In this document: piece by piece, positions 3,984-62,865 of the stretch
How the letters are laid out: every line of letters begins with the position of its first letter
How positions within the stretch are numbered: position 1 is the stretch's first letter
Source of the DNA: Malacoraja senta
Lineage: Eukaryota
Assembly (NCBI GenBank): GCA_038087875.1
Contig: CM075978.1
Location: 175,026,001-175,090,000 of the forward strand
Reading direction: 5' to 3'
Length of the DNA: 64,000 nt
Translations under genes and position numbers: made by a program
Notes under the pieces: generated by a model
Seen by the model: only the letters and a program-made list of their open reading frames with translations
Databases searched by the model: none
What the model was told of the DNA's origin: nothing

Positions 3984-4289
3984 CTGTTTTGAAATCCGGA
4001 ACATCATACGCTGCAGTCAATGGAGTAGGAAGAGTGAGGTGTGCCACTTGGCAAATATAGACCGACCCGCCCTGGTGTGTCCTTGTTTCCTTTAAATGAC
4101 TGGAAACTTCATATAATCCATTCATAGTCAGTTTTACCGTTGTATGTATGTCCACGAAAATCTCAATGCCATTTCGGTACCAAGTAAGGTTAAGTGACTC
4201 CGGGTAAAATTCATCCGCTTTACATAAGAGATTCAATGTGGTGGAGTTTTGATCAGGCAGTTTGGAGATTCTGAGCTGAGCTGGTGGAA
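3984..4289 (-). CDS. Gene A exon: Ig C1-set domain (SIRP/B7-H6-like)
   Basis: tttgcag acceptor, AG|GTAAC donor, 306 bp, phase 1-1; LLCKADEFYPESLNLTWYRNG...YICQVAHLTL. Confidence 0.92.
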
Positions 4290-4455
4290 CTGCAAATGTA
4301 AAGCAGAAAATGTATTTGTGATCCGAAAAACAACTACACGACATAACTGTTTTGTACAATACTGGTCGACGACCTCATAATTACACAGTTATGGGAACGT
4401 TCAGGATTAGCATATTGTCGGCTGTTTTTTTCGGATATTAACAACATAAATCGTA

Positions 4456-5608
4456 GGTGGACAAAAATGTTGGAGAAACTTAACGGGTGAGGCAGCATCT
4501 GTGAAGGTGACGTTTCGGGTCGAGACCCTTCTTCAGACTGATGTGGGGGTGGGAAGAAGAAAGGAAGAGGCGGATACAGAGGCTGTGGGAGAGCTGGGAA
4601 GGGGATAAAGCAAGGAATACCTGGAATTGGAGAAGTCAACTTTCATACCAATGGGGTGTAAACTACCCAAACAAAATATGAGATGCTTCTCCTCCAATTT
4701 GCGGTGGGACTCACTCTGGCCATGGAGGAGGCCCAGACAGAAAGGTCGGATTCTGAATGGGAGGGGCAGTTGCAGTGCTGATCAGGTTGGTTAATGTGAA
4801 CTGAGTGGAGGTGGAGGGCGAAGCGATCGCCAAACCTGCGATTGGCCTCACCGATGTAAAGTAGTTGACACCTGGAACAGCGGATGCAATAGATGAAGTT
4901 GGAGGAGGTGCAGGCGAACCTCTACCTCACCTGGAAAGACTGCTTTGGTCCTTGGATGGAGTTGGGGGGGGGAAGAGGTAAAGCGACAAGTGTAGCGTTT
5001 CCTGCATTTGCAAGGGAGAGTTCCAGGGGAGGGGGTGGGAAGGGACGAATTGACCAGGGCATTACGGAGGGAGCGGTCGCTGCAGAAAGCCAAAAGGGGA
5101 GAAGATGGGAAGAAGTGGCCAGTGGTGGGATCCCATTGGAGGTGGTGAAAAGGTCATAGGATAATCTGTTGTACGTGATGGTTGGTAGGGTGGAAGGTGA
5201 GGACAAGGAGGACTCTCTCTGTGTTATGCGTGGGGGGGGGGGTGGGAGTGAGAGCGGAGCTGCGGGATATGGAGGAGACCCTGGTGAGAGCCTCATCTAT
5301 AGTCGAAGACGGGAACCCACGTTTCATAAAGAATGAGGACATCTCCGATGCCCTGGTTTGGAACACCTCATCCTGGGTGCAGATGCGGCGTAGACGGAGG
5401 AATTGGGAGTAGGAGAGTCCTTACAGAAAGCAGGGCGTGAAGAAGTGTAGTCCAGATAACCATGGGAGTCAGTGGGTTTGTAGCAGATGTCGGTCCGTTG
5501 CCTGCGATGGAGATAATGAGGTCTAGAAACGGTAGGGAGATGTCGGAAATTGTCCAGGTGAATTTGAGTGCCGTATGGAAGTTGGTGGTGAAACGGATGC
5601 AGTCGTCA
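4456..5608 (-). mobile_element. Penelope-like element fragment (end of RT, GIY-YIG endonuclease, terminal pLTR-like repeat)
   Basis: Minus strand reads IYCIRCSRCQLLYIGEA at ~4840-4900; element absent at the paralogous site ~63950. Confidence 0.85.
4506..4539 (-). ncRNA. Minimal hammerhead-ribozyme-like motif at the Penelope 3' end
   Basis: CTGAAGA-A-GGGTC(TC)GACCC-GAAACGTC-AC; core resembles CUGANGA...GAAA...UH. Confidence 0.55.
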
Positions 5609-6480
5609 TCAGCCGTGCAATCTGATTCTGTACACGTCCTTTAAAAATAAAAGCCTTAATGAGAAACTTGACAGCAAGCATCTGAGAAAAATGAAAAATT
5701 TTAATCGTGCCCATTTTTTCAAAGAGTGTGAATTGTTGAATTTTATCAAAAAATGGTCAGTTTATCTTTAACTAACTCGCAACTTTACGGATTTGCTCTG
5801 TTTTTCAAATCTCAGACTGAGCACCATATATTACTTAGTTTTCTTGAAGTAAGAACAAATTAATTGGTAAATTTGAAAAAACACATAGGAATATCAGGTT
5901 TAGCCATTTATGTTTACTCGGGAGAGTGGGGAAGACGTTAAATACCGCTCCGGCAATTTCATAACGCGTTGGATATAAAAAAAAAGATCCAGCTAGGGTA
6001 GAAGGCCAGCAGGGCGGGTCCATAATGAGGGGGAATGTTGGAGACGGGAGAAGTGACCGTAACAGGGCGACGGTTGATGCCGCACCGGCAGTTGGAAATA
6101 AAATGGTCCAAATAAATGCTTCCCAACTGTGCCGGTCTATTGCATTCAAAATTTTCTCCTGCCCCTCCTCTCTTCCAGCTTTATACCTCCCACCCAGTGC
6201 AGATATTAGATAGCATTAATCAGCCTCGGAAAGTACTGCTGAAGATAGTAACTGTGTTGGAATCTGCGTTTCGGCGAATTTGGAGCAACGTCCGCATATT
6301 AGCAGCAAACAAACCAACCAATTAAACAGTTGTCCTAAGATCTTAAGACACAATATTACAAAGCACATGGGTACTTCGAATGGAAAACCTGGTCACATTG
6401 CTTTCCAGAATTATAGAATTGAACAAAAATAGAATAATATCACCATATTGCAGCACATTTGCTTTTACTGTCACACATAC

Positions 6481-6801
6481 CGAAGACTTTGATTCTGGAG
6501 CCAGATCCATTAACAATTTCACTTCCCTGGATTCCCACTCCGCAGTAATAGACTCCAGCATCATCTGCACGGATATTCAATATATGCAAGGAGGCTCCAC
6601 CTTGTTTAAAACGAACAAATATCTTCCTACTGTCAGAGGCTGTTTGCAGAATGTTCTGTTCGCCAAGTTTCCACCAATAAAATTCCACAGGTGGACTATT
6701 TTGCGATAGTCCAATAATGCAATAGAGAGTGATATTTGAATATAAGATCACGTGTTTGCTCAAAGGAGATTGAACGACTTGGTAGTGAGCATCAACGGCA
6801 A
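6481..6801 (-). CDS. Gene A exon: Ig V-set domain with J-like G strand (NGSGSRIKVF)
   Basis: ctgctacag acceptor, G|GTATGT donor, 321 bp, phase 1-1; ITLYC, FYWWK, DAGVYYC. Confidence 0.93.
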
Positions 6802-6969
6802 CTGTAGCAGAAGAAAATCAAAAATTATCCCATAACAGACGAGGACAGACACAATTAATCACAATTTTAAAGGATGCGTGAATGTGGATGTGCGTTCGAT
6901 ATACGGGTGCTGATCACAGAGGGTGTAGGTCAGTAAGAGGATGAAAACAAAAGAACAATCGAGTAATAC

Positions 6970-7024
6970 CTGCATTTATAATCAAGAGCGACGATAACAA
7001 CAGAACCACATCCCGAAACGGCAT
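6970..7024 (-). CDS. Gene A signal-peptide exon MPFRDVVLLLSSLLIINA
   Basis: ATG at 7024, hydrophobic core, phase-1 donor G|GTATT matching the V exon; conserved at 62322-62376. Confidence 0.82.
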
Positions 7025-9029
7025 ACTGAACTATGAAAATCATGTCCTAGGAAGTCCGAAATTCACTCAGGAGTTGCTGAAAGCAGCATGTAAGTAAAGT
7101 ATGATCTGGACAAAGAGAAATAGAGTTAACTTTTCTGTTCGAAAGACTTGGTCAAATGGAACATGTTGCACAATGCATTACCATGTCTCTGCTGTGAAAG
7201 AAAGGTTACGCGATTTGACGTGGGCTGAAGGAAATGACGTCCGATACGAAATTACCCAATTGCAGCTGTTCAGAAATGAGCTTCGGGATAAATTCTGGAA
7301 ACAACCTGTCGGTAGTGAATGTCATGTTCCGTGATGCAAACACATATTTGCCATCCATCCAGACGAATCTTGTCTTTGCTGAGTTTACCAATGAACTTCA
7401 TGCTAGTAGCTGCAGGTTTATATCAGAACAGAAAATTAAAAGTCTTCCACATATGTAGAAACTGAAAGAAGTCGGACATCCGAAAATACTAATAACCAGA
7501 TAGAAAATGACGTAAATGCGAAAAGGAAAGCTTTAAATATTTCTGTCGGCCATTAATGATTTGGATTGTGCCACCAACGTGTCACAAGACGTATTTAGTA
7601 TATAAGATAGATCCATCTTGGGACACTACCAACCCTTCTCCAAAGTACTATGTCCTATTCTTGACACATTAGTGGTAACATTAAAGGAACTATTAGCAAA
7701 ACAAACGGAAATGCCGAAAATATATACAGTAGCTGGTTATAGAACCGTCCTATCAGAGAATCGCAGAATCGTACAACAGTGCAACAAGCCTTGGTGTAGC
7801 TGCGCCAGCTACAACAACTGTGAATCATGTCTTCGCTAAACCCAATTGTTTGCGAGTCCGGCATCACTCTCTATTTTTCCTTTCTGTATACCTGTCGAAA
7901 TTTCTTCTGGACGTTGTAATTGTAATTGTGTTTGCCTTTCCGTCATGTTTGAAATAAACGTGCCTCTCCTTCTCTCCCATCCATTACATATTAAATGTTC
8001 CTATGTGTTGTAATTACCATCCAGTGACTGCCACATGTTCGTCTACGAATACGCTATTCCCAAATATGCCCCATCATTTTAACCTTAAACACAAGCGCGT
8101 CGGTCGCTTCTTCGTTGTTGCTAAAGCTGCACCACAAGTCCCCTTTTGATGTAACATTTGACATTTGGTGTTCAGAAGGGTGCCGCGATATTTGCTAAAC
8201 GGTCCTCGATTCTATGCCTGGTCCTGCCGACATACAGGACGAACATCGGATGCAGTTGACGAGTTTAGAAGATGTGCACGTTGCACTTTACTCTAGCACA
8301 ATGTGTTTAAAAAAATATATAAAGCAGCATTTGCTTCTTGCCATGGCCGATTCGGCGGAAACGGAACCAGATAACGTTTTACGTCCCACAACTTTCATTG
8401 GACTAGGAAAGAGTGTTTCTATCGATGGCGGATAAATTGGAGGACTAGGGAAAGGGAAACAACTCTGAGTAAACCCGTCTTTGAGGTTGCGGTTAGCATC
8501 AGTTATGCGTCTTTGTCTATGAAGCATGTTGCTAATAATGAAGCTCTGAGACGTATCCAGCAGGCTGTGGCATACCAAAATGGAATGAAAAGAGAGGTAC
8601 TGTGATGAGAGGGAGAAATTGGCATTTATGATACACACGGAAATAGTCTCAATTACTTAAGTCGGAGAGGTCTGCAATAAGCCTAGATGATTGAGCGTTC
8701 TTATAACAGTTTCATTTGGATTTGGATGGTTAAACAGAATAGTCAGTGGGTGAGGGTCGCAACCGGATGCTCAAGGTCTCTCTGAAAAGTCATCAAACAA
8801 TCTAGTTTCTTTTCTCCAATGCAGAGGGGAACGATTTGTGAACACCGAATTTTAATGTCAAACCGGAGGAAGTACAAAAAAATCGCTGCTTAACATGGAA
8901 AAAATATTTCCGTCTCTGCATGTTGGGAAAATTAATTGTTCCTCCTATGGTATAAATGCTATAAAACAGATCTATTTAGGTGAATGTGATTGAGCAGACC
9001 TTGGATTCACCAAGAAGGTAATCATTTCA

Positions 9030-24869: not shown

Positions 24870-25069
24870 NNNNNNNNNNNNNNNNNNNNNNNNNNNNNNN
24901 NNNNNNNNNNNNNNNNNNNNNNNNNNNNNNNNNNNNNNNNNNNNNNNNNNNNNNNNNNNNNNNNNNNNNNNNNNNNNNNNNNNNNNNNNNNNNNNNNNNN
25001 NNNNNNNNNNNNNNNNNNNNNNNNNNNNNNNNNNNNNNNNNNNNNNNNNNNNNNNNNNNNNNNNNNNNN
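24870..25069. other. Assembly gap (200 N)
   Basis: Run of exactly 200 N. Confidence 1.
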
Positions 25070-29700: not shown

Positions 29701-30510
29701 TCCTTTCCCGTTAATTCTGGGGTCATTAACCATCCCTTTACTCTATTTCCCTTTAACTCCGTCCTCGACTATCCCATTTGACACCCCACCCCCCTTATTC
29801 AGTTTTAAACCACCCGTGTAACAGTGGCACACCTGCCTGCCAGAATGCTGGTCCCCCACCTGTTAAGATGCAATCCGTCCCTTTTGTACAGTTCCCCCTT
29901 ACTCCAAAACAGATCCCAGTGATCTAAGAATCTAAATCCCTGCCCCTTGCACCAGATCCTCAGCCACACATTCAGGTCCCGTATCTCCCTGTTCCTGCTC
30001 TCGCCAGCACGAGGAACTGGAAGCAAACCCGAGATAACAACCCTGGAGGTCCTGCTTTTCAGCATTTTTCCGAGCTCTCTAAAGTCACGCTGCAGAATAT
30101 TCATCCCCTTCTTTCCGACATCGTTTGTGCCGACATGCACTAGCACTTTCGGCTGTTCACCTTCGCCCTGGAGGATTTTCTGCACTCTGTCCGTGACATC
30201 CTGGATCTTGGCACCAGGAAGGCAGCACACCATCCTCGAATCCCGTCTATTGCCGCAGAAATCCCTGTCCGTACCTCTCATAATGGAGTCTCCAACTACA
30301 ATGGCGTTGCTTGACGTTGGCCGCTTTGGTTTTGACTCAACAGCCCTTTTTGCTTCGCAAGCCAGTCCGCCGCTCAGTGTGATAACGTCTTCTGTCCCGT
30401 CAGCTTCTAAGTGGGTGAACCTGTTCACAAGAGGTACAACACCCGGGGACGTTTGCATTCCATGATTCCCTCCCTTTCTCACCGTCACCCACCTTCTCTC
30501 TTCCAGTACC
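26742..30510 (-). mobile_element. CR1 LINE, near full-length: ORF1 SGNH/GDSL esterase part plus ORF2 EN-RT, disrupted
   Basis: 29805-30488 VVGDSI...VHVGTND esterase; EN 28782-29354; RT 27018-27965; (CATAGAAA)n tail at ~26742. Confidence 0.95.
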
Positions 30511-36589: not shown

Positions 36590-36887
36590 GGACCGATGGG
36601 GGGGAAGCGATATCCGATGCTGCGCAGAAGACGCCGCTCAACAAAATAAACGTTACACACCTATTTCCCTTCCTCTTCGATCTTAATCAACCTAACGTAA
36701 CGGTGCACTGGCAAAGAGACGGAAATAAGAACTTCCTGAGAAGAGATAGCAGAACATTACGGGTAGGGGGCGCAACCGTTGTTGCTGCTGCATGTGAGCG
36801 TGCTGACAGTAGAATGTACTTCCACATTCCACAAACTTGCGGGTTAAACGGTTTAAAATGAAACCAGTCAAGAACCTATCATATACT
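36590..36887 (+). pseudogene. Decayed Ig V exon paralogous to the gene B V exon
   Basis: ISDAAQKT..INVT...VHWQRDGNKNFLRRDSR vs ISNVVQKT..INIT...VFWWKDGNKGFLKEDSR; both Cys lost, frameshifts, acceptor lost, GTGAG donor kept. Confidence 0.8.
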
Positions 36888-36919
36888 GTGAGGGGCGTTT
36901 GAATTTCAAATGTGAAACA

Positions 36920-38180
36920 CATGGGTGTGGCAGAGAATTCCAGAGCTTCACCACTCTCTGTGTAAAAAATGTTTTTCTCATCTCAGTCCTAAAGGATTTC
37001 CCCTTTATCCTTAAACTGTGACCCCTTGTTCTGGACTTCCCCAACATCGGGAACAATCTTCCTGCATCTAGCCTGTCCAACCCCTTAAGAATTGTGTAAG
37101 TTTCTATAAGATCCCCCCTCAATCTTCTAAATTCTAGCGAGTACAAGCCGAGTCTATCCAGTCTTTCTTCATATGAAAGTCCTGACATCCTAGGAATCAG
37201 TCTGGTGAACCTTCTCTGTACTCCCTCTATGGCACGAATGTCCTTTCTCAGATTAGGAGACCAAAACTGTACGCAATACTCCAGGTGTGGTCTCACCAAG
37301 ACCCTGTACAACTCCAGTAGAACCTCCATGCACCTATACTCAAATCCTTTTGCTATGAATGCTAACATACCATTCGCTTTCTTCACTGCCTGCATGCCTA
37401 CTTTCAACGACTGGTGTACCATGACACCCAGGTCTCGTTGCATCTCCCCTTTTCCTAATCGGCCACCATTCAGGTAATAGTCTACTTTCCTGTTCTTGCC
37501 ACCAAAGTGGATAACCTCACATGTATCCATATTATACTGCATTTGCCATGCATTTGACCACTCACCCAGCCTATCCAAGTCATCTTGCAGCCTCCTAGCA
37601 TCTTCCTCACAGCTAACACTGCCCCCCCCCCCCCCAGCTACGTGTCATCCGCAAACTTGGAGATGTTGCATTCAATTCCCTCGTCCAAATCATTAATGTA
37701 TATTGTAAATAGCTGGGGTCCCAGCACTGAGCCTTGCGGTACCCCACTAGTTACTGCCTGCCATTCTGAAAAGGACCCGTTAACTCCTACTCTTTGCTTC
37801 CTGTTTGCCAGCCAGTTCTCTATCCACATCAATACTGAACCCCCAATACCGTGTGCTTTAAGTTTGTATACTAATCTCTTATGTGGGACCTTGTCGAAAG
37901 CCTTCTGAAAGTCCAGATATAACACATCCACTGGTTCTCCCTTATCCACTCTACTAGTTACCTCCTCGAAAAATACTATAAGATTCTTCAGACATGATTT
38001 ACCTTTCATAAATCCATGCTGACTTTGTCCAATGATTTCACCACTTTACAAATGTGCTGCTATCCCATCTTTAATAACTGACTCTAGCAGTTTCCCCACT
38101 ACCGATGTTAGACTAACTGGTCTGTAATTCCCCGTTTTCTCTCTCCCTCCCTTTTTAAAAAGTGGGGTTACATTAGCTGC
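36920..38180 (-). mobile_element. CR1 RT fragment, truncated at both ends
   Basis: ORFs 36868-37578, 37638-38009 and 38046-38255. Confidence 0.93.
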
Positions 38181-38530: not shown

Positions 38531-38854
38531 ATTATGTTCAGCTATATATACGGCCTGCTCATAATACCTGTAATTCAGACATCTTACTTAGAACTGTGGA
38601 AATGACGAGGACGAAACCGGTCTGAGGAAATAAATGAGCTTTGAGGGTCGTTAAAGGGGAAAAGAACAGAAAAGAGGCGTTTTAAACCAAGATTGGTTCA
38701 TTCATGGCCTTATCAAATTCTCGAGGTGGTGGGGAGGAGGGGGGGGGGGCAATGTCCTTATTTGGCATCTTATTTTAATTAGATCCTCTCATTGGGAAAA
38801 TCGAGAAATGATCGATGTGCGGACTGTTTGATGTCCTCAAATAAAACAGCCTTC

Positions 38855-38910
38855 TATTTCCTGACTCAATTTCCGCCTTCAGGCACTCAGCAAGCCCTAT
38901 ATTAAAAGCA
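38855..38910 (+). promoter_or_regulatory. Candidate gene B proximal promoter (ETS-like TTTCCTG overlapping AP-1 TGACTCA; TATA-like TATATTAAAA)
   Basis: Motif matches only, ~100-150 bp upstream of the leader exon. Confidence 0.3.
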
Positions 38911-39007
38911 ACGCATTTCTCGGCCATGTCATGGGGTGACCGACGTGATTAGGAGTCAGTGTAGAAGATACCGTGACGATTATTAACCAGACCTTCATCT
39001 TTCCCAG

Positions 39008-39084
39008 CCAGGCCTGCTTCGTCGTCGATACGTTTCTGAAAGTGTCACCTTGGACGATGTATTTCCTTGGAATTTTGAATGCGG
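39008..39084 (+). CDS. Gene B leader exon; start uncertain (ATG at 39057, or spliced from an upstream mini-exon)
   Basis: ...MYFLGILNA G|GTAAAC phase-1 donor, ending like the leaders of genes A and C (IINA, FINA); tttcccag acceptor at 39007. Confidence 0.6.
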
Positions 39085-39372
39085 GTAAACTAGGGCTTCT
39101 ATTGCTTTTTATTTATGGGTCTTCAAATTCATATGATAGTTGTACCTTATAATGTCATGCTGAATTGTCCATAAAGTCATTGCTGTTGTATGAGTTCTGG
39201 AAAGGAGTGCAATTTACGAAACCTTTACGAGGACACAAAAGGCGGGCATAATAATTCGGTTCAATTCATCGTATATATTTATTCTGCGTGCAATAAGATA
39301 TTTGTCAGCAGTGTTAAATTTCCATTGCTGTATATCAATGACTAAACTGGATTGTGCACCATCTATTGACAG

Positions 39373-39684
39373 CTGCTGAGAACAGGTCGGGCAAGACGAT
39401 ATCGAATGTTGTTCAGAAGACGGTGATCAGTGGCATAAACATTACCTGTCGGTGTTCCTTCCCCTTCAATGTAAATCTGTCAAACCTAAAGGTTTTCTGG
39501 TGGAAAGATGGAAATAAAGGCTTCCTGAAAGAAGATAGCAGGAAAATCTTCATCATAAGGGCAGGAGGCGCCTACCTTCACCTGCTGAATGTCACGGTCT
39601 CGGACGCCGGAACATACTATTGTCTTGCAAAACAAGCGGGCCGAACGGTTGGGGAGGGAACAGGAGAGCAACTGATCGTATATG
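39373..39684 (+). CDS. Gene B exon: Ig V-set domain with J-like GEGTGEQLIVY
   Basis: ttgacag acceptor, G|GTGAG donor, 312 bp, phase 1-1; VFWWK, DAGTYYC. Confidence 0.93.
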
Positions 39685-40608
39685 GTGAGCGAACGGTACT
39701 TTAGTTGCTAGACAAAAGTGCTGGAGAAACTCAGCGGGTGCAGCAGCATCTATGGAGCGAAGGAAATAGGCAACGTATCGGGCCGAAACGTTGCCTATTT
39801 CCTTCGCTCCATAGATGCTGCTGCATCTGCTGAGTTTCTCCAGCACTTTTGTATACCTTCGATTTTCCAGCATCTGCAGTTCCATCTTAGGTACTTTAGT
39901 TGCAGCTCAAATTTGGATGTTGCGTCACAAAAGTCTTTAATCCAGAATACAAATGTGCAAAACGTTGGAAAATTATTCTAGATTGATTCGTTTGAAAATA
40001 TAGGTCAGAGGGCATGACAGCAATGATATTTGAGTTGAAGTATATTGAAGGTAGTGAGTGTAAGATGAATAAATACAACGGATTCAATTTGACACTGAAC
40101 GCCGAGGCGGGGATCCTCCTGATGTTTTCCTAATGATAATGTTATCAATATATAATCCTGTGAATTGAAAGAGCGAGGTTTTTACTTGCACAAATTAATT
40201 GAAATATAAATTAGATTTCTTGCGCCGAATTAGAGAAACAAGAAATTTTAGTGATAGCATTCTCTGTAAGCCAAAGTCTGCAACTGTTTATGACTGATTA
40301 TATTGGGAAGTTGAAATATTCACAACAGTACTGTGCCTTTGAAGAGTTGAAACTTGAAAGTTGATTCGCGCATGTTAGCACAGGAAACAAGTGTGCAAAT
40401 TAGTGCTCTTTTCTTAAATTAAATGTCAAGGGAATGCATGTCAAGGGAAGGAGGGTGGGGGGGGGGGGGGTCAATTGCGTTGAAGAACACCTTCATCTGG
40501 GCTCCCGATTTAAAAATTATGATGGAATTAAGTAGCGTTGGAACAAATGCTATTGGATGATGTAATCGACTTTTCCCCTTTCTTTTAATTCCATTTCTCT
40601 TTACCTAG

Positions 40609-40914
40609 CTGTCCCTTCTCCTCTGAAGATTGTATCTGTTCGATCTAGAAATGCTGCGACTCATTTCCTGAAAATCCAGTGCAGAACGGCTGCGTTTTAC
40701 CCGAAAGAATTTAATCTCACCTGGCATAGAAATGGTTCCGTCATCCAATCTGGATTTCGGCATGAACAAAATTCAACGGCAGACGGATTGTATGAAGTTA
40801 TCAGCTCTTTAGAGGAGAAACGGGCAGTCAAAGAAGGAACCGTTTACACATGTAAAATTATTCACCGTTCTATGCTAACTCCAGCAACAGCCAACTACAC
40901 GGTTCCTCATGAAG
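40609..40914 (+). CDS. Gene B exon: Ig C1-set domain (not in ORF track)
   Basis: ttacctag acceptor, AAG|GTAAC donor, 306 bp; AVPSPLKIVS...IQCRTAAFYPKEFNLTWHRNG...DGLYEVISSL...YTCKIIHRSMLTPATANYTV. Confidence 0.93.
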
Positions 40915-41459
40915 GTAACGTAGTATAATGGATATAATTAATATAACATAGTATAATGGATAGTCCACTGAATAATAATATTAATAGTAAAAATAAAATG
41001 TGAGGATTTTTAAAAGACCGTATTTTCTGCAGTAAATTTATTTTCCTAGAACTTGTGCAATTTTCCTATTTTATGCCAGCGTAGACGGACGCTGTACAGT
41101 CCATTCAGCCTATGTTGCCTCCCAGAAGATCCCATCAATACCGTTCCCGCAATCGATCGCGCACCTGTAGCTCATTCCCTTTCAAGTGATCTACAAGTCC
41201 ACTCTGATGCCCCCTCAAACATCACACTTTCCCGAGGAATAATGTAAAAATAATCAATTAACTCACCAAGCAGTTCCTTGGTAAAATCTCAGAGAAAGTG
41301 CAATGTCCATGCAGACAGTTTCCGAAGCCAGGCCTGAGCTTGGATATCTGGAGTTGTGAATCGATAACACTATTGCTGCACCATTAACTCGGTGAAGGTT
41401 TTGTTTTTGTTCGTTTATGGCTGAAATGGATAACCAATTGCAACACAGACACAGAGGCT

Positions 41460-43510
41460 ACCTAAAAATAATCTGCGCAAATACCGAAATATGAAGTACT
41501 CCTCGTCCAATGTGTCTGTGGCCTCACTCTGGTAACGCAGGATGCCCAGAACAGAAAGGTCAGTGTGCGAGTGGGAAGGGGATTTAAAATAGTTAGCAAC
41601 CGGGAAATCCAATAGGCCTCGGCAGACCTCATGCATGTTTTTAGCTTAACGGCCGCATAATCTACCTTTGTCTCGTTATTGTACGGTAGCCCGCATCAGG
41701 AACACTGGATGCAGTAGATAAGGTTATGGGAGGTGGGTGGGGGGAGGGGGGATGGAGGAGGGATGGGGGGGGGGGGGATCACGTTCACTAAAGAATGAGA
41801 GCAAGGTGGAAGTTAGTGGAGTAATTAATAAAGGCCATAAGTTCTGCACGAGTGCAGGAAGTAGCTCCAGCGTAGTTGACGATGTATTCGAGGAGGGGTT
41901 CGGGGGTAACGACAGCGTATGTTTTAAACAAGCACTGCACAATGTAACCAACACAATGATAGCCTGTAGCTGTGGCTGATGTGAGTGTCCAGCGGCACCT
42001 TTAACTTGGAGAAAGTGAGTGGAGTCAAAAGAGAAGTTATTGAGGGTGACGACAAATTCCTCTAGACACAGGAGATTGTTCGTAGATATCGTTGGTCTCT
42101 TTTCAAGGAAGAAACGGAGGCCATGACATTGTCCTGATCCTAACCACTCTACACCCACTACAGATGTCAGAGGTCATTGGGAGAAGGCAGGAGAATGGGG
42201 TTAGGAGGGAGAGATAGATCAGCCATGATAAAATTGCTGAGTAGACATGATGGGCCGAATTGCCTAATTCTACCATTCCTTATGACCTTAATAGCCCTCC
42301 CCTGCCCGCCCATGCACAGCTCCTCCCAACCCCTCCTCTCTGAAGGTCTCTGGTCCCCACGCCCGAGCCTGCTTCTACACCACTGCTCGCCCCTGACCCC
42401 ACCCCTCACCTCTGTCGTGTTTTCACCACCCCCTGACCTCCTTTGCGATACAGTACGGCCAGTCCTCGACAATTAGTACTACATCCTACACCCGTGCAGA
42501 ACTCAACTTCACCACTAATTTCCACCATGCCCACAAATGTACCTGGACTATCTCTGATACCGCTTTATCCTTCCTTTCTCTCTCTCTCTCCATTCACCCC
42601 ACCAGCCTCCGCAATACTAAACATCATCTTCGGACATTTCTGTCGCCTCCAACCTGATCCCATTATTGATCACATATTTACATCTCCATGCCTTTCCGCC
42701 TTTTGCAGACTGTTCCTCCACAACTATGTTTCATTCATCCCTTTAAACCCACACACCCCAACCCGATGTACTTTTCTCTACAACTGCCAGGAGACGTAAT
42801 ACCTGCCACTGTACCTCTTTCCTCGCCTCTATGCACGGACTCCGACAGTCTTTCCAGGTTGGACAGTAGTTCACATGCACCTTCTCTAATCTTATCTACT
42901 GCATCGGATGGTCTGGATGCGGGGTCCTGTACAATAGTGTGAAAAGGTGTGCATTCTGCGGCCATTTAGCTGAGCATGCTCAGACCTACTGGATCTCCCG
43001 GTAGCTAAGTATATTACTTCCCCTTTTACATTCCTACACTGACCTTTCTGTCCGAGGACCTGCCTTGCACAGAGTGGCGAAAGCAAATTCGACGAACAGC
43101 ACCTCATATTTCACTTGTATAGCATACAAGCCAGCGGCATGAACGTTGAATTCTCTCATTTTAGTAATGTCCACAAGCACGCACCTCCATCTCCTCTCCC
43201 TCTCCCCCACCCCGTCCCGCCCCCTCCCATATGCCCCCTTCCTCTAAATGTCGATTTACCAGTCCCACAATTCGCAACGATGTACCCCTCTTGGGATAGC
43301 GTCGTCCCAAACCAACAGTCGGCCTAACGGGGAACCGCCCTGCGTGGGGTCATATCGTGGTAGTCCCGATTGCTGCCGTTTTTTTCTTGCTTCTGCCCCC
43401 ACCCCCCACAATCAGTCTGAAGAAGTGTCCCGACACAAAACGTCACTTCTCCATTTTCTCCAACGATGCTGCCTGACCCGCTAAGTTACGCCAGCATTTT
43501 CAGTCTATCT
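41460..43510. mobile_element. Degenerate Penelope-like element(s) in inverted arrangement
   Basis: Minus strand RT/GIY-YIG remnants 41460-42160 (VVTLNNFSFDSTHFLQVKG; HSHTDLSVLG); plus strand RT/GIY-YIG remnants 42470-43170 ending in the pLTR-like repeat at ~43410-43510. Confidence 0.7.
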
Positions 43511-43893
43511 ATGAGAACTAACTTGTTGGCTCTTGCATTAATTGGGGACTGTTAGTGGGGAGAAGACGCCTGCAATGATTCACTCCTGACCAGCGTCAGT
43601 AACATTAACATCTCCTTCAAAATTTGGTGAACAGAATATATCCAAATTAATGTATTATGTTCTACAATTCCTGTTTCCTAACGGTCAATATCCCACAAGG
43701 TTCACTTAAGATCTATTTATTTCACTCGTAATCGCGCCATAAAGCGAAATTGCTGGCTCTGCCGCCTTCCACGCGGTGCTGGTGAAATCCATTGAGTGAA
43801 CATTTGAAATATCTTGCTTTGTTTTCCGCAAAGTCTACTTTGAAATAACTTAATTAAATATAAACGTTTGGTAATCGGTTTAACCTCCCACAG

Positions 43894-43995
43894 CTGTCGA
43901 GGGTTTATCTGCTTCTCTAATCGCTGGAAGTATCGGAGGTGCAGTGTTAATTTTAATGTTCATCGTTATCATCGTGATGGCAATTATATTTAGAG
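43894..43995 (+). CDS. Gene B transmembrane exon (uncharged)
   Basis: cccacag acceptor, AG|GTATG donor; AVEGLSASLIAGSIGGAVLILMFIVIIVMAIIFR. Confidence 0.88.
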
Positions 43996-44339
43996 GTATG
44001 TTTCTCATCCATTTTTTAACATTATCATCTCAGTATAATATTATAATATAATAATATTGGTAATTACGCGATTCTCTTGATAATAAAGGAAATGAAACAT
44101 TTTGTATGGGCAAAAATTATGATTATAATAAACAGCACCGACTAACGAAGATATTACATTTTGCATGTGACTAATGTTTGATGATCACATATTTTGAATT
44201 ATATGTATTATTTCGACACATTATCATATAGCAGCCAGCATTTAATTGTACCTGTTGAACATCTGTGAATTTTGTGATAAAAATGTGTTTCATTGATTGA
44301 AAGATAGCGCAGAGAAACCGGCCTTTTAACCCATCGATT

Positions 44340-44570
44340 CCAAGCCGGCCATCGATCATCCGTTCACACTAGCTCTACGTTAACCTACTTTCGCATCCAC
44401 TCAATACACAGTGGGGGCATTTACAGAGGTCAATTAACCCACAAACCGCACATTATTGGGATGTGGGAGTATACGGAGCAACGGATGAAACCCACGTGGT
44501 CACAGGGAGAACATGCCTCAAACTCCGCATTTACCTGCTGCACCACTGTGTCGTCCAACACTTTGGAAAA
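44340..44570 (-). mobile_element. V-SINE (HE1-like) remnant
   Basis: V-domain-like block similar to 56680-56880 and 61380-61495. Confidence 0.6.
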
Positions 44571-44732
44571 AGCGTGGCACAAACAACGTGGTTTAAGCCT
44601 TCACACATATGTAGTGAAGCCGTATACAGTGAAACTCTATCGTGCAATTATCACATGATATTACGTTCTTGGCGTGCAAAAACCCCCACCATGTCGCACG
44701 GCCTTTTATCACTATTTTATTTTTCCGAGCAG

Positions 44733-44776
44733 GTGCAAAGAAGCATACAGTAAATACAAATCGGACACAAAGTTGG
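44733..44776 (+). CDS. Gene B cytoplasmic exon 1 (GAKKHTVNTNRTQSW)
   Basis: tttttccgagcag acceptor, TGG|GTAAG donor; phase 1-0 bridges the TM exon and the next phase-0 exon. Confidence 0.72.
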
Positions 44777-45039
44777 GTAAGGCTAATTTAATATATGACT
44801 ATTCCATTTGTGAAAGTAGAGACAGGGTTGTGCCTTTGTTGAAACCAAGCCGTTTTAATGAGACCACGTCTTATTCTGTTTGAACGTATTCCCAATCCGT
44901 GAATTTCACAGTACACTACACAAAGGAGGACATAAAGAACAATACAAATGCATTTACAGGAGTTCGCATTTATTATAGATATCATATATATTGTTTACAC
45001 CAGGCGTAGTGAAAGGAATATTTTCATTTGCACCTTACT

Positions 45040-46490
45040 GTTTCCTGTCCAGCCACAGGCGAGATTTCGGAATACTAGAGAGTGGCCATGCTGTTTCTTT
45101 GTTTAAGAAGGGAAGTAGAGGGAATCCGAGGCTCAACCAGTTGGATCTAAATATAGATCGTTTAACCACATGTTAGTGGTTGGGTACCGATTGGAAAGAC
45201 TTCGTCAAGAGAGGATCTACTGACATTGGGAAGAGAATGGACGGATTAGCGATAGCCAGCACGGTCTAACACGTTTTACTGATGTAATTGAGTTTTCTGA
45301 ACAGATGACAAAGGAGATTGATGAAGGCAGGGCAGTAGCTGCTGCAAACACGAATCTAATGAAGGCTTGTGATAAAGTTCCTCATGATAGGTTGATCCAA
45401 AAGATCAAGATCAAGATATACATGATCCACTGTAACTTGGTGATATGAATTCAGAACTGGCTTCTTCAGAGCGACAGAGGTTTGTCGAAGGAAGATCTGC
45501 CTGAAGGTCTGTGATCAGTGGAATTCCACAGGGACCTCTGTTATTTGTGATATATATAAATGACGTAGACATAAACCTAGATGGGTTGTTGAGTAAATTT
45601 GCTGAACAACAGGAGGAGTTGCAGACAGCGAGGAGGGCTGTCGGAAGATACAGAGGGTTATAGATCATCGATAGAAGTGGGTGGAGAAATGGCAGACGGA
45701 GCATGATGGAGTATAACCCGAGCAGTCTGAGCTGTTGCACCTTAGAATGGCGCATGTAAGGATAATGTCAAGATGCTAAAGTGAATTGATGTGCAGGGAG
45801 GTCATGGAGTCCAAGCTCATAGCTCACTGAAGACGGCAGCACGAAGAGATAGGCTGGTAAAGATGGCATATGATATGTTTGCTTTCATTGCTACGGCATT
45901 GAATATAAAAGTCAATAAATCATGATACAGCTCTATAAGACTCTGGTTAAGGCCCATTTCGAGATTTCCGTGCGGTTCTGGTAGCCTCATTACAGAAAGC
46001 CTTTTGGGAGGGTGCAGAAGAGGTTTATCAGGTGCGCTTGGATTAGAGCGGTGCAAGTAAATGAAGGGGTTGTATAAACTTGGATTGTTTTTTTCTGGAA
46101 ATTCGGAGCATGAGGGCAGAATTGATAGAATGAAAGGCATAGATAGGGTAGACCGTCAGAACCTTTTCCACAGAACAGAAATGTCTAATGCTAGAGGGCA
46201 TAGCTATAAGGTGTGTGGGAGAATGTTTGATGGAGGTATACGGGGTAAGTTCTTTACATAGCGATTGTTGTTTGCCTGGAAGGCATTACCATGTGTGCTG
46301 GTGGAGGCAGACACGATAGTGGCGTTTAATAGACATTTAGATGGACATATGCACAAGGAAAAACGGATATGGATCATGTACAGATAGATGAGATCAGTTT
46401 AAAATGGCATCGTGTTCAGCACAAGCATTTTGGGCTGAACACGATGCCAAGGGCGCGTTCCTATGCTGTACTGTTCTATGTTCCATATTA
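45040..46490 (+). mobile_element. Old degenerate CR1
   Basis: RT and 3' UTR remnants (LFKKGSR, CDKVPH). Confidence 0.7.
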
Positions 46491-46689
46491 TGTGCAGTTA
46501 TCATATTGATCTGTCCAGTTGCGACTGTTTGCCCCGCAGTCGATTAGACTCTGGAAATTGGTCTTCGTGCGATAAGTCATTCGAGACAAACAAAAAATAA
46601 TTGTCCCTCGTTTATTCTTGCCAGTGCATTCCACGCGAAAGCTTTATCTGTAGTATAACTAATCTTAAAATAAGTTCATGAATTTCCAG

Positions 46690-46800
46690 GAAGAATGTGA
46701 GAACGTTGGCCGCAATCCGATGTACGCATATTTGGATCTTGTCCGCTGCAAAGAATATGAGAAACCTGAAGAGCATGTGGAGAGCCCTGTGTATGCAAAG
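46690..46800 (+). CDS. Gene B cytoplasmic exon 2 (EECENVGRNPMYAYLDLVRCKEYEKPEEHVESPVYAK)
   Basis: tttccag acceptor, AAG|GTAAAG donor, phase 0-0; two YxxL/I motifs. Confidence 0.8.
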
Positions 46801-46912
46801 GTAAAGTTCGTTTCACGCTTTTACTCTACACATCTGAGAATATAGATACGTCGTACTCGGAGAAATTAGTCATTTTCTTGTCCAATTAACAATAGCATAC
46901 ATTTGTGCACAG

Positions 46913-47044
46913 ATCGCAATTGTGGCTGCTGCTGATAATGAACTGGCATACGCTCCCTTGAACACGTCAAGCTCGACAAAGAATTTGAAACGGCAACATA
47001 AAGAAATAAGTGTAATATATAGCGGGGTGAAAAATAACAACTAA
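46913..47044 (+). CDS. Gene B last exon with two canonical ITIMs (LAYAPL, VIYSGV)
   Basis: tgcacag acceptor; IAIVAAADNELAYAPLNTSSSTKNLKRQHKEISVIYSGVKNNN*. Confidence 0.85.
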   Translation: MAIVAAADNELAYAPLNTSSSTKNLKRQHKEISVIYSGVKNNN

Positions 47045-47057
47045 ATTCGTCGGGCTA

Positions 47058-48107
47058 TATGTAGGTATGTTACAAAACTTACCTTCAGTCGCGCTGTAAT
47101 TCTGCCACTGGCCGTGTGCGCGATTTTGGCGCCTTTAAGGGGGGGGCGGGGTTAAAACGCGGTTTATCCTCCCTTGTCCTGGAAATATTTTGTTGGAGTA
47201 CAAAACTTCGCTGACAAAATCGTTCCTACCGGCGTTTTGTGAATTTTTTATTTTTATTAAATCGTCAATGTCAGCGCTACAGTCATTTTAAAAGCAGCTC
47301 CTGAAGCGTCAACGCCAATAACGGGGACGGATTTCACACAATGGACAGGTAAACGAAAGTGCTTTCTTTAAATGTATAAAAGTGCTTCTTAAGAAGCCTT
47401 TAATTCACATTTTGTCATGCGACACGGTGATTTTATTCCCCGAATTAACGGCAGTATTTTTCATGCCAATACGGGGTTAAATTCACCGCAAATGAACGTT
47501 CCAAAAGATCGCGTTCCAGAAATTCTCACTCGCAAGATGAATTAAATCCCCATTAATTTACAGGTATTAAACATTCAATTCCTTCCATTTGGCCTGTAAA
47601 TTCATGAAAATTAGATTTAAAAATTATGTTATATTGTGAATTATTGTGTGAATGTTATTTGGACACTTAGGCTATTTAAAAATGTTAATCTATTCTTAAG
47701 AAATTGATAGATGTTTAGATCTAGTAATTGAATTTTGTAATTAGCTACAATTAGGTAACTAACTAATTATATGCTTTACTTTCATGTCTTCGAAGTAAGA
47801 TTGTTTCATATTTGTTTCAGAATGCTTCAATCTATAATACCTGAAAATTTCTTTCAGTTACCATAATTTTTAAGAAAGTTATGGGCTTTTAACTGTCCTC
47901 GATCACAGCTTTTGTGTTAAGTCAATGGAAAAGCAATAGGGAACTAGATGCTAATTTCTGAGTATGATAATGGCCATAACTTTTTTAATACTGAAGATAT
48001 GAAAGTGAATTAAGTGTCAAATTAAACTTCTTTTTATGCTTTATCTGATGGGATAAATTGCAGACTTTATTTTTTAAATCTCAAAATTTTGTAACATTGC
48101 TACTATA
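47058..48107. mobile_element. ~1.05-kb non-autonomous DNA transposon with TA-rich flanks
   Basis: Imperfect TIR TATGTAGGTATGTTACAAAA vs TATAGTAGCAATGTTACAAAA (reverse complement of the right end). Confidence 0.65.
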
Positions 48108-50089: not shown

Positions 50090-52400
50090 TACTTGTCGGC
50101 CACACACTGTTCACAAACTAAACAAACTTTGAGTCAGTGGACTGGTACATATTCAGGCATTCCGCAGCTAACCTGAATGAGTACGTCACCACCGTGACTG
50201 ACTTCGTCAGCAAGTCCATAGAAGATTGTGTATGGACGAAGACAATCCGAGTGTTCCCCAACTCGAAACCATGGATGAAACGCGAGGTGCATTCACAGGT
50301 CAAGGCCAGTTTTCCTGCACACAAGTCAAACAACCCAGAGCAGTACAAGAAGGCCTGCTATCATATTCGCAAAGCCATCAAGGATGCCAACAGACATTAC
50401 CGGGACAAACTTTGATCGAGGTATAATCACTCGGACACACAGAGAATGTGGCATGGTCCGAATAAGATAACTGGCTGCAAAGCTAGGTCAGGCAACATCA
50501 TTGGTGATAGTGCGACCTTACCTAATGAACTGAATGCTTTCTATGCTCGCTTCGAGCAGAACGCCAACAGAGCGGTGACACCTGGCGCATCAAACTCCTT
50601 TGTGCCTCTCCGCAGGGTGACTGGAGCAGAGGTTAGATCGGCCTTCCTGATGGTAAACTCACAAACAGGAACTGGACCAGACGGAGTTCCTAGCCGTGTC
50701 CTCATTAGCTGCACAGTTCAGCTAGCGGAGTATTCACGAACATCTTTAATCTCTTCCTACTCCGTTCTGGTACCCACCTGCTTCAAAAAGACCACCATTA
50801 TCCCATTGCCAAAGAAAAGCAAGACCCCATGCCTAAACGATTACCGTCATGTGGCCTTCACGTCCACCGTCATGAAATGTTTTGAGGGGCTAGTTATGAA
50901 ACGCATTTAATCCAGTCCACCCAGTGGATTTGACCCTACTGGCACAACAGGTCCACTGATGAAGCCATCGCCCGAGCCCTACACACATCCCTACAACACC
51001 TGAAGAAGAGAGACACCCACATCAGACTCCTAATTCATAATAATAATAATAATAATAATAATAACTTTATATATAAAGCACTTTAAACAACCACAGTTGC
51101 CACAAAGTGCTGTACATGAGAAATCATGAACAAAAAGCTATTACAAACAATTAAAAACCATTAAAAACCGTAAAACGAAGGACTATAAAAACACACTAAA
51201 AATTAAAAGACATTAAAAGCACTAAAAACAGGGGCAATGCCTCAGCCAGTGTCGAAAGCCAAAGAATAAAAATATGTTTTTAGGGAGGATTTGAAGATGG
51301 ACAGTGAGGGGGCCTGTCTGATGTGCAGCGGCAAGGTGTTCCAGAGTGCCGGAGCAGCAACAGAAAAAGCTCTATCCCCTCTGAGCTTCCGCTTAGACCT
51401 TGGTACCTCAAGGAGCAGCTGATCAGCTGACCCGAGGCACCGGGCAGGAGCATATAGGTGGAGCAGCTCAGAGAGGTAAGGCTACAACTCTGCCTTTAAT
51501 ACCATTATACCATCCCAGCTTAACACCAAACTCGCAGGACGGGTTCAGCACTCATCTTTGCAACTGGATCCTCAACTTTCTGACCAACAGACCCTAATCA
51601 GTGAGAATAGGGGACAGATCATCCTCCACGATAATCTTCCACACTGGTGCTTTGCAAGGATGTGTTCTCAGCTCCCGTCTATACTCCCTGTACACCCACG
51701 ACTGTGCAGCCATGAATAAACCTAATTCAAGTTTCAAATCCCCAGATTACACCACCATTGTGTGCCGATAAACAAATAATGATGAGACAGAGTACAGGAA
51801 GGAGATTGAGAACCTCGTGTCCTGGTGTGGAGACAATAAGCTTTCTCTCAACATCAGCAAGATAGTGATCGACTTCAGGAAGCAAAGTGGTACACATACC
51901 CCAGTTTGTATTGATGGTGCCGAAGTAGAGATGGTCGAAACCTTGGATTTCCTCGGAGTCAATACCACCAACAACTTCTCCTGGACAACACATATTGAAG
52001 CAACGTGCAAGAAGGAACACCAACGCTTCTGCTTCCTTAGAAGGCTTAGGAAGTTTGGCATGTCCCCTACATCACTCAACAACTTCTACAGACGCACCAT
52101 AGAAAGCATTTTATCAGGATGCGTCACAGCTCCATGTAGGACCATAAGGAATTGCAGCAAATTGTGGATGCAGCCCAGGCCATCACTCAAACAAACCCTT
52201 CTATAGATTCAATTTATACTTAACTCTGCCTTGGCAACGTCAGCAGCATGATCATAGACGAGTCGCACCCTGACCACTCCCTCTTCTACCCTCTCCCATC
52301 AGGCAAAAGGTGTGAAAAGGCAAACCACCAGTCATGGACAGTTTCTTGTCAGCTGTTATCAGGCAACTGAATCACCCTACCACAACCAGAGAGCAGTGCT
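50090..52400 (+). mobile_element. Rex1/Babar LINE, degenerate
   Basis: ORFs 50137-50415, 50446-50910, 51817-52206 (CLNDYRHVAFTSTVMKCFE). Confidence 0.88.
51040..51480 (-). mobile_element. L2-type LINE 3' fragment nested in Rex1
   Basis: Minus strand reads LLHLYAPARCLGSADQLLLEVPRS...RAFSVAAPALWNTLP; (TAA)n tail at ~51040-51063. Confidence 0.75.
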
Positions 52401-53974: not shown

Positions 53975-55700
53975 AGCTCGAATGTCGGCGAGGCATTACT
54001 CCCTGATGAGCTCAATGCGTTTTACGCACGCTTTGATAGAGAGAACACCGATGTACCTTCCCGAGCCCCCATTCGCTGTGATGGTATTTCAGTCTCAGTG
54101 ACAGAGGCCGACGTCAGGAAATCCTTCAGAGGGGTGAACCCTCGAAACGCGCCTGGACCTGATAGTATACCTGGTGTTCTAAAAACCTGTGCGGACCAAC
54201 TGGCTGGAGTTTTTACGGACATTTTAACCTCTCACTTCTGAGGTCTGAGGTTCCCATCTGCTTCAAAAGGGCATCAATTATACCAGTGCCCAAGAAGAGT
54301 TAGGTGAGGTGCCTCAACGACTATCGACCTGTGGCACTAACGCCTGTGGTGATGAAGTGCTTTGAAAGGTTGATCATGGCGCAAATCAACTCCTACCTCG
54401 ACAAAAACCTGGACCCAATGCAGTTCGCTTACCGCCACAACAGATCAACGGTGGATGCGATCTTGCTGGCCCTCCACTCCGCTCTGGACCACTTGGACAA
54501 CAAAAACTCATATGTCAGGCTGTTATTCATTGATTACAGCACGGCATTTAATACTATCATCCCCTCCGAGCTGGTTACCAAACTCGCAGAACTGGGTCTC
54601 TGCGCATCCCTCTGCAATTTAATCATCGACTTCCACATTCACAAACCACAGTCTGTTTGTATTGGTGGAAATGTGTCAGACTCGATAACAATCAGAACGG
54701 GAGCACCTCAAGGCTGCGTGCTCAGCCCCCTGCTGTACTCACTCTATACTCATGACTGCGTAGCCGGTCATAGTGCGAACTCCATCATCAAGTTCGCTGA
54801 CGACACCACTGTTGTGGGACATATCTCTGATGGAGATGAGTCAGAGTATAGAAGAGAGATCGAGCAACTGTCCATATGGTGGCAGCACAATAACCTGGCC
54901 CTCAACACCAGCCAAACCAAGGAACTGATTGTGGACTTTGGAAGGAGTAGGATGGGGACCCACAGTCCCGTTTATATCAACGGGTCGATGGTTGAAAGGA
55001 TCAAGAACTTCAAATTCCTGGACGTGCACATCTCTGAAGATCTCTCCTGGTCCGAGAACACTGATGCAATTATCAAGAAAGTACATCAGCGCCCCTACTT
55101 CCTGAGAAGATTACGGAGAGTTGGTTTGTCAAGGAGGACTCTCTCTAACTTCTACAGGTGCACAGTAGAGAGCATGCTGACCGGTTGCATCGTGGCTTGG
55201 TTCGGCAACTTGAGCGCCCTGGAGAGGAAAAGACTACAAAAAGTAGTAAACACTGCCCAGTCCATCATCGGCTCTGACCTTCCTTCAATCGAGGGGATTT
55301 ATCGCAGTCGCTGCCTCAAAAAGACTTTCAGTATCATCAAAGACCCACACCATCCTGGCCACACACTCATCTCCCTGCTACCTTCAGGTAAAAGGTACAG
55401 GAGCCTGAAGACTGCAACGACCAGGTTCAGGAATAGCTACTTCCCCACAGCCATCAGGCTATTAAACCTGGCGCGGACAAAACTCTGAACATTAATAACC
55501 CATTATCTGTTATTTGCACTTTATTAGTTTATTTATTCATGTGTGTATATATTTATATAATGGTATATGGACACACTGATCTGTTTTGTTGTCAATGCCT
55601 ACTATGTTCTGTTGTGCTGAAGCAAAGCAAGAATTTCATTGTCCTATCAGGTACACATGACAATATACTCACTTGAACTTGAACTTGAACTTTAACTTTC
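53975..55700 (+). mobile_element. Rex1/Babar LINE, 5'-truncated, with a long intact RT ORF (54304-55488)
   Basis: [30 protein letters not shown]; (TTGAAC)n tail. Confidence 0.93.
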
Positions 55701-62321: not shown

Positions 62322-62376
62322 ATGCTTTTTCGCGATGTGGTTCTGTTATTATCGTCGCTCTTGTTTATAAACGCAG
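62322..62376 (+). CDS. Gene C signal-peptide exon MLFRDVVLLLSSLLFINA
   Basis: ATG at 62322, phase-1 donor G|GTATT; paralog of 6970-7024. Confidence 0.82.
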
Positions 62377-62544
62377 GTATTTTTCGATTTTTCTTTTGTT
62401 TTCATCTTCTTACTGACCTACACCCTCTGTGATCTGCACCCGTATATCGAACGCACATCCATTTTCATGCATCTTTTAAAAGTGCGATTAATTGTGTCTG
62501 TCCTCGTCTGTTATGGGATAATTTTTGATTTTCTTCTGCTACAG

Positions 62545-62865
62545 TTGCCGTTGATGCTCACTACCAAATCGATCAATCTCCGACGATCAAACACGCGATC
62601 TTACATTCAAATATCACTCTCTATTGCATTATTGGACTATCGCACAATAGTCAACCTGTGGAATTTTATTGGTGGAAACTTGGCGAACAGAACGTTCTGC
62701 AAACAGCTTCTGACAGTAGGAAGATATTTCTTCGTTTTAAACAAGGTGGAGCTTCCTTGCATATATTGAATATCCATGCAGATGATGCTGGAGTCTATTA
62801 CTGCGGAGTAGGAATCCAGGGAAGCGAGATTGTGAATGGATCTAGCTCCAGAATTAAAGTCTTCG
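62545..62865 (+). CDS. Gene C exon: Ig V-set domain (paralog of gene A V)
   Basis: ctgctacag acceptor, G|GTATGT donor, 321 bp open frame; J-like motif altered to NGSSSRIKVF. Confidence 0.93.

Follow-up and report, generated by a model that had tools for sequence, protein, structure and literature searches.

Two described systems offer points of comparison for the receptor gene reported here. Mammalian SIRP-alpha (PTPNS1/SHPS-1) has a V domain with a J-like G strand, followed by C1-set immunoglobulin (Ig) domains and an uncharged transmembrane (TM) helix, and its tail consists of two modules, each with a tyrosine of the immunoreceptor tyrosine-based inhibitory motif (ITIM) type and a YAxx tyrosine 23–24 residues further on. 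Mouse SHPS-1 has three cytoplasmic exons. In cartilaginous fish, UrIg and UrIg2 combine non-rearranging V(J) and C1-type domains; the epaulette shark UrIg2 model comprises one VJ and 11 C domains, and its description mentions neither an ITIM nor SIRP (PMC12227049). We analyzed 64,000 nucleotides (nt) of the Malacoraja senta genome (GCA_038087875.1, contig CM075978.1, positions 175,026,001–175,090,000 of the forward strand; hereafter “the window”) and describe a gene on its plus strand that shares the V(J) and C1-type domains with both systems, and the uncharged TM helix and two-module tail with SIRP-alpha. We conclude that this window gene probably belongs, as an inhibitory type, to one subfamily of a large multigene family, which in our searches was restricted to chondrichthyans.

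The window gene was assembled by scripted splicing into seven exons, with GT-AG sites at all junctions and incoming phases 1-1-1-1-0-0. The spliced frame is 1035 nt long and encodes 344 residues, from an ATG at 39057 to a TAA stop at 47042–47044. The predicted protein comprises, in order, a leader, a V-like Ig domain, a C1-set Ig domain, an uncharged TM segment, and a 96-residue tail with four tyrosine motifs. Exon 1 (leader) spans 39030–39084 by homology, residues 2–18 of the ray and sawfish leaders aligning with 39033–39083 in tblastn and the donor GT following at 39085; counted from the first ATG, it spans 39057–39084. Exon 2 (39373–39684) encodes the V-like domain with the J-like G strand GEGTGEQLIVY, is in phase 1 at both ends, and matches the Pfam models Ig_3, ig, and V-set. 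Exon 3 (40609–40914) encodes the C1-set domain, which is 68% identical to the Pristis protein. Exon 4 (43894–43995) encodes a stalk and the TM helix, forms the hydropathy peak of the protein, and aligns with the TM segment of the long-tailed shark forms. Exon 5 (44733–44776; 44 nt) is juxtamembrane cytoplasmic, enters in phase 1 and leaves in phase 0 through GT-AG sites, and aligns gaplessly with the shark orthologs. The first tail module (NPMYAYL, 23 residues, then PVYAK) lies in exon 6 (46690–46800) and was recovered by tblastn with the tails of Heterodontus P0013 and P0151 and by a hidden Markov model (HMM) of the module. The second (LAYAPL, 23 residues, then VIYSGV and the stop) lies in exon 7 (46913–47044), which is 46% identical to the last 39 residues of P0013, including the C-terminal VKN.N. 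A probable 3′ untranslated region is placed at 47045–47280, the first ATTAAA at 47256 coming from a pattern scan only.

A preliminary description of this DNA had proposed the same seven-exon chain, and its five listed junctions (39684/40609, 40914/43894, 43995/44733, 44776/46690, and 46800/46913), its phases, and its leader-V-C1-TM-tail architecture all proved correct; the architecture agrees with the Pfam C1-set match of exon 3, the Ig models matched by exon 2, and the hydrophobic exon 4. It had also noted that the V exon alone is visible among the open reading frames (ORFs), and at a length of at least 90 residues the only ORF containing an exon of the gene was indeed that at 39354–39704. 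The leader exon that it proposed is present, but coding homology begins at 39030 rather than at 39008. Full-length matches of the spliced protein to those of sharks and rays (local blastp E 1e-109 to 1e-115) put the gene model well beyond chance and, at the level of sequence, confirm it.

Searching 1.84 billion representatives by phmmer with the C1 exon as query returned single-domain family matches at 45–58% identity. All of these came from sharks, rays, and the chimaera Callorhinchus (the clusters looked up were chondrichthyan in 10 of 10 cases), and in the follow-up searches the only non-chondrichthyan match at E ≤ 1e-10 was rodent SIRP-alpha. Their automatic names are mostly SIRP-alpha-like, with others called SIRP-beta-1-like, NCR3LG1-like, tapasin-related, MHC class II beta-like, or uncharacterized. 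The window gene resembles the family over its full length and in the order of its domains. The best full-length match was Heterodontus P0013, with 47% identity over 347 residues including the tail and the C-terminal end, and the only gap falling at an exon junction is one residue at exon 6/7.

Two types of relative were found. Heterodontus francisci P0013 and P0151 and Stegostoma tigrinum P0152 and P0153 (named [quoted passage not shown]) have the same leader-V-C1-TM-tail architecture at 39–47% full-length identity, and share with the window gene the uncharged TM segment, the two-module tail with four tyrosines, and the C-terminal VKN.N. The window gene differs from these shark relatives in having proline at −2 in its first two tyrosine motifs, where they have LTYAAL and TVYAE, in reading ACG at the initiator position, and in having no protein on record. 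The batoid relatives Pristis pectinata P0158, Hemitrygon akajei P0159, and Mobula hypostoma P0160 are 57–64% identical to it over the leader, V-like, and C1 regions (ectodomain identity 64% over 243 residues, 62%, and 57%, respectively). Unlike the window gene, these three are of the activating type, with an arginine in the TM segment and a short tail without tyrosine modules, and the subfamily therefore has activating and inhibitory versions. The window gene has the features of the inhibitory subtype, namely an uncharged TM helix and repeated modules (here two) of an ITIM, about 23 residues, and a YAxx motif. An alternative, arginine-bearing TM exon like that of the batoid relatives was not found in the window.

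The ectodomain was compared with known Ig folds. Exon 3 scored 40.4 bits against the Pfam C1-set model (cut-off 21, E 3.9e-10), and its matches in the PDB were Ig constant domains, SIRP-gamma, SIRP-alpha, and MHC. It carries the C1 signature of the family (QCRTAAFYP, LTWH.NG, and YTC..H) with the C1 cysteines and tryptophan conserved. Exon 2 matched several Pfam Ig models, including the C-terminal half of V-set, and is 62–69% identical to the Pristis and Hemitrygon proteins. The V-like signature of the family (YWW/FWW in strand C, DxGxYYC, and GxGTGxxLxV in the G strand, with invariant C27, W42, D77, and G79) is present, as is a CRC motif in strand B that is specific to batoids and common to the window gene and its batoid relatives. 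The domain is short, with 56 residues between the cysteines. Its AlphaFold model (43-sequence alignment) has eight strands and a mean confidence score (pLDDT) of 89.3, and the closest solved folds are of the I-set (obscurin-like, titin, and IgLON), followed by shark VNAR, BTLA, and PD-L1. Domain 1 is thus modeled as a short, I-set-like or V-like domain, which keeps the V-like Ig character originally assigned to it but qualifies the plain label “V”. No second C1 exon was found between the V and TM exons, including the 2979-nt intron 3. In our best explanation of the locus, in which we have fair confidence, a non-rearranging germline gene encodes a type I membrane glycoprotein that is the inhibitory-type form within its subfamily.

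Exon 4 encodes the only strongly hydrophobic stretch of the protein (Kyte-Doolittle 3.2 over 19 residues), and the helix contains no Arg, Lys, Asp, or Glu; the TM segment of the preliminary description was thus borne out. The tail contains PMYAYL, PVYAK|I (its isoleucine is contributed by exon 7 across the exon 6/7 junction), LAYAPL, and VIYSGV. All four had been noted, and the last two are canonical ITIMs, the only ones to fit the consensus (I/V/L/S)xYxx(L/V). With at least one (I/V/L/S)xYxx(L/V/I) motif in a type I receptor with an uncharged TM helix, the predicted protein falls in the ITIM-bearing class. LAYAPL and VIYSGV are conserved in position relative to LTYAAL/LTYLAL and xVYAAV/PIYAV of the shark orthologs. 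Exons 6 and 7 duplicate a single module, and the module of P0151 aligns to both. From chimaera to rays, the family has one to three such modules per protein, with a consensus of roughly xxLTYAALxLxxSKKTxKPKxxEExTVYAxTK.

The tail had been called SIRP-alpha-like, and in its two-module layout it is. The tyrosines of the window protein are spaced by 23, 15, and 23 residues, compared with 24, 17, and 24 in rodent SIRP-alpha (P0164), whose modules are ITYADL..EYASI and LTYADL..EYASV with a within-module spacing of 24. As in SIRP, there are four tyrosines in two ITIM-containing pairs; the likeness stops at the motifs, of which two of four fit the strict ITIM consensus, and at the ectodomain, which has one C1 domain where SIRP-alpha has two and so departs from the V(J)-C1-C1 arrangement of SIRP. 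The V domain of SIRP-alpha is also full-length (66 residues between the cysteines versus 56), and overall identity between SIRP-alpha and the window protein is only 21–31%. The family tail-module HMM scored 43.2 bits on the window tail and 22.9 bits on the rodent SIRP-alpha tail, the maximum among 1000 shuffles being 9.9. Its signal comes mostly from the ITIM itself, LTYA(D/A)L(N/D)L, and shuffles were its only controls, so the scores demonstrate a shared layout and do not prove homology.

The family profile matched SIRP-alpha at E 8e-24, with Ig light and heavy chains, UrIg2, SIRP-gamma, and B7-H6 at similar levels, and no single named family is therefore clearly closest. The UrIg2 structure was one of the top PDB matches of the profile, and SIRP-alpha and SIRP-gamma also ranked among the best there. 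Identity with UrIg or UrIg2 was rejected on the grounds of the 11 C domains and an inhibitory tail not being described there (PMC12227049); UrIg/UrIg2 is a different family from that of the window gene. The surroundings of the gene within the window hold only paralogs and repeats and no synteny marker. Orthology to tetrapod SIRPA is not established.

From its motifs, the receptor is predicted to recruit SHP-1/SHP-2. In the mechanism that we propose, modeled on what is established for SIRP-alpha, PECAM-1, and further receptors with ITIMs, ligand binding would cluster the receptor and Src-family kinases would phosphorylate its tail. SHP-1/SHP-2 would then bind through their tandem SH2 domains to the ITIM pair of exon 7 (LAYAPL and VIYSGV, separated by 23 residues), the two tyrosines of exon 6 contributing more weakly, and once docked would damp signals from activating relatives.

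The start of the gene was compared with its orthologs and with public sequencing runs. The Pristis, Hemitrygon, and Mobula proteins start with MFLKRS.W.(M/I)Y..AI.NA, and most shark relatives also align from a methionine in this register. The equivalent codon of the window gene (39030–39032) reads ACG, not ATG, and the in-frame leader from it is T-FLKVSPWTMYFLGILNA. There is no other in-frame ATG between the upstream in-frame stop and 39057. The receptor had been described as complete, and the frame is indeed open through the stop, but completeness is doubtful in the assembly, in which the conserved start is ACG and the next ATG yields a 9-residue leader. Four public runs were compared over 38790–44789, and three of them (X1, X2, and X6) read T at 39031, that is, ATG, at full depth. 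At this end of the compared stretch, X1 is 99.5% identical to the window over 945 nt, and X2 and X6 are about 95–97% identical. These runs thus indicate that close relatives or other individuals retain the ancestral start. The C at 39031 in the assembly is a derived allele or an error, and the ATG/ACG difference may be a segregating start-loss allele. The window copy would accordingly be an allele that has lost its start or is weakened, or the result of a base error, with other individuals or close relatives carrying ATG. At the non-coding positions 39008, 39281–39282, 39305, 39919, and 39924, all four runs agree against the window, which suggests that the assembled haplotype holds several derived bases or errors beyond the start codon.

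Several observations weigh against a functional inhibitory receptor encoded by this copy. Translation from 39057 would place just nine residues ahead of the mature N-terminus, about six of them hydrophobic, and we regard it as doubtful that this leader serves as a working signal peptide. No protein from the window gene was found in a collection of 5.8 billion proteins, even when the search was seeded with its exon translations, and no annotation pipeline has therefore produced it; the start-codon change may be the reason. An RNA-Seq-restricted library search listed no run for exons 6–7. The four public runs are genomic DNA, their contigs covering introns and exons alike over exons 1–5. In the contig pieces compared between related skates, exons differ by about 2.5–3% and introns by 4–5.6%, and so slight an excess of exon conservation does not demonstrate purifying selection. 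Lastly, the first two tyrosine motifs, with proline at −2, are not canonical ITIMs.

Some of these observations bear on an alternative in which the window copy is a non-functional allele or a young pseudogene, the change from ATG to ACG blocking translation or targeting and the intact frame reflecting a recent lesion. The ACG falls exactly at Met1 of the three batoid orthologs and of most shark ones, the upstream stop is followed by no in-frame ATG before 39057, the gene is without a protein on record, and a degenerate V-exon relic 2.5 kb upstream shows that genes in the cluster decay. However, all other exons are intact with good splice sites, and the ATG in X1, X2, and X6 indicates that the gene is not dead in the lineage. 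The downstream ATG at 39057 has an A at −3, ACG with a purine at −3 can itself initiate at low efficiency, and the difference at 39031 could be a single-base assembly error. We consider this alternative unlikely.

Under a second alternative, the protein would act as a ligand or in adhesion, in the manner of B7-H6/NCR3LG1, its tyrosines serving as YxxPhi motifs for endocytic sorting rather than for SHP recruitment. Some family members are automatically named NCR3LG1-like, the family profile also matches B7-H6 structures (E 3.5e-20), and all four motifs fit YxxPhi as well. Against this, a conserved module of two tyrosines, set a constant 23 residues apart and with an ITIM consensus, is repeated throughout the family, and short-tailed relatives with a charged TM segment coexist with the long-tailed forms, a combination that marks paired inhibitory and activating receptors and not ligands; we judge the ligand reading improbable. 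Signaling of the tail in a positive sense or through adaptors, by an immunoreceptor tyrosine-based activation motif (ITAM)-like YAKI-x11-YAPL or by NPMY (NPxY) binding proteins with phosphotyrosine-binding domains, is very improbable and was rejected: both patterns are present in the window protein, but the spacing of 11 is outside the usual 6–8 of ITAMs, the orthologs read YAET and (N/K)LTY at these sites so that neither pattern is conserved, and both look like lineage-specific accidents in the sequence.

The window as a whole is a receptor cluster. One paralog lies on the minus strand (locus 3997–7025), with its V exon at 6781–6482 and its C1 exon at 4284–3997, the latter 41% identical to the C1 exon of the window gene. 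The leader and V exon of another lie on the plus strand at 62325–62865, from where that gene runs off the window. The leaders and V exons of these two paralogs are near-identical to each other (MPFRDVVLL.. and FYWWKLGEQN), and both are about 36% identical to the V domain of the window gene and are therefore not its direct partners. The relic 2.5 kb upstream of the gene (36595–36886, plus strand) is a decayed V exon of the same subfamily, the exon itself being placed at 36595–36843. It is 37–40% identical to the V domain of the gene and its orthologs and keeps RDGNKNFL..DSR. The strand-B cysteine is gone, three residues are deleted, and the frame meets stop codons; neither a C1 nor a TM relic to go with it was found. 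Just downstream of it lies a reverse-transcriptase fragment of a long interspersed nuclear element (LINE; 36868–38009, minus strand), and reverse-transcriptase-like ORFs from LINE fragments fill much of the space between receptors (54304–55488, plus; 29805–30488, minus; 50137–52206, plus). Intron 2 contains a 195-bp foldback (palindromic) repeat at 39695–39889, 10 bp past the V-exon donor and flanked by the direct repeat GTACTTTAGTTGC. Its word depth reaches millions in four skate runs, indicating a very abundant element. The relative represented by run X4 (organism C) lacks the insertion, one of its contigs passing straight from 39694 to 39890. A stretch of 200 N at 24870–25069 is an assembly gap or masked.

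What is new here is a probable, unannotated inhibitory member of a large paired V-C1 receptor family of cartilaginous fish. This family is known only as inconsistently named database predictions, and our literature search on SIRP or signal-regulatory protein in shark, elasmobranch, and cartilaginous fish found no description of it. The close match of the tail to the SIRP-alpha layout makes the age of the SIRP/SHP-2 signaling cassette testable, and the differing start codons of the assembly and the other runs give a specific example of an immune receptor that may be functionally polymorphic. We offer only tentatively the joint reading that the SIRP-type tail is homologous between the chondrichthyan family and tetrapod SIRP-alpha and that 39031 is a possibly segregating start-loss site. 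If the tail homology is true, both the SIRP-type inhibitory cassette and the existence of V-C1 receptors as activating–inhibitory pairs would be older than the split between cartilaginous and bony vertebrates. If the start-loss allele is real, it would constitute presence/absence-type functional variation in an inhibitory receptor, as in KIR-like systems.

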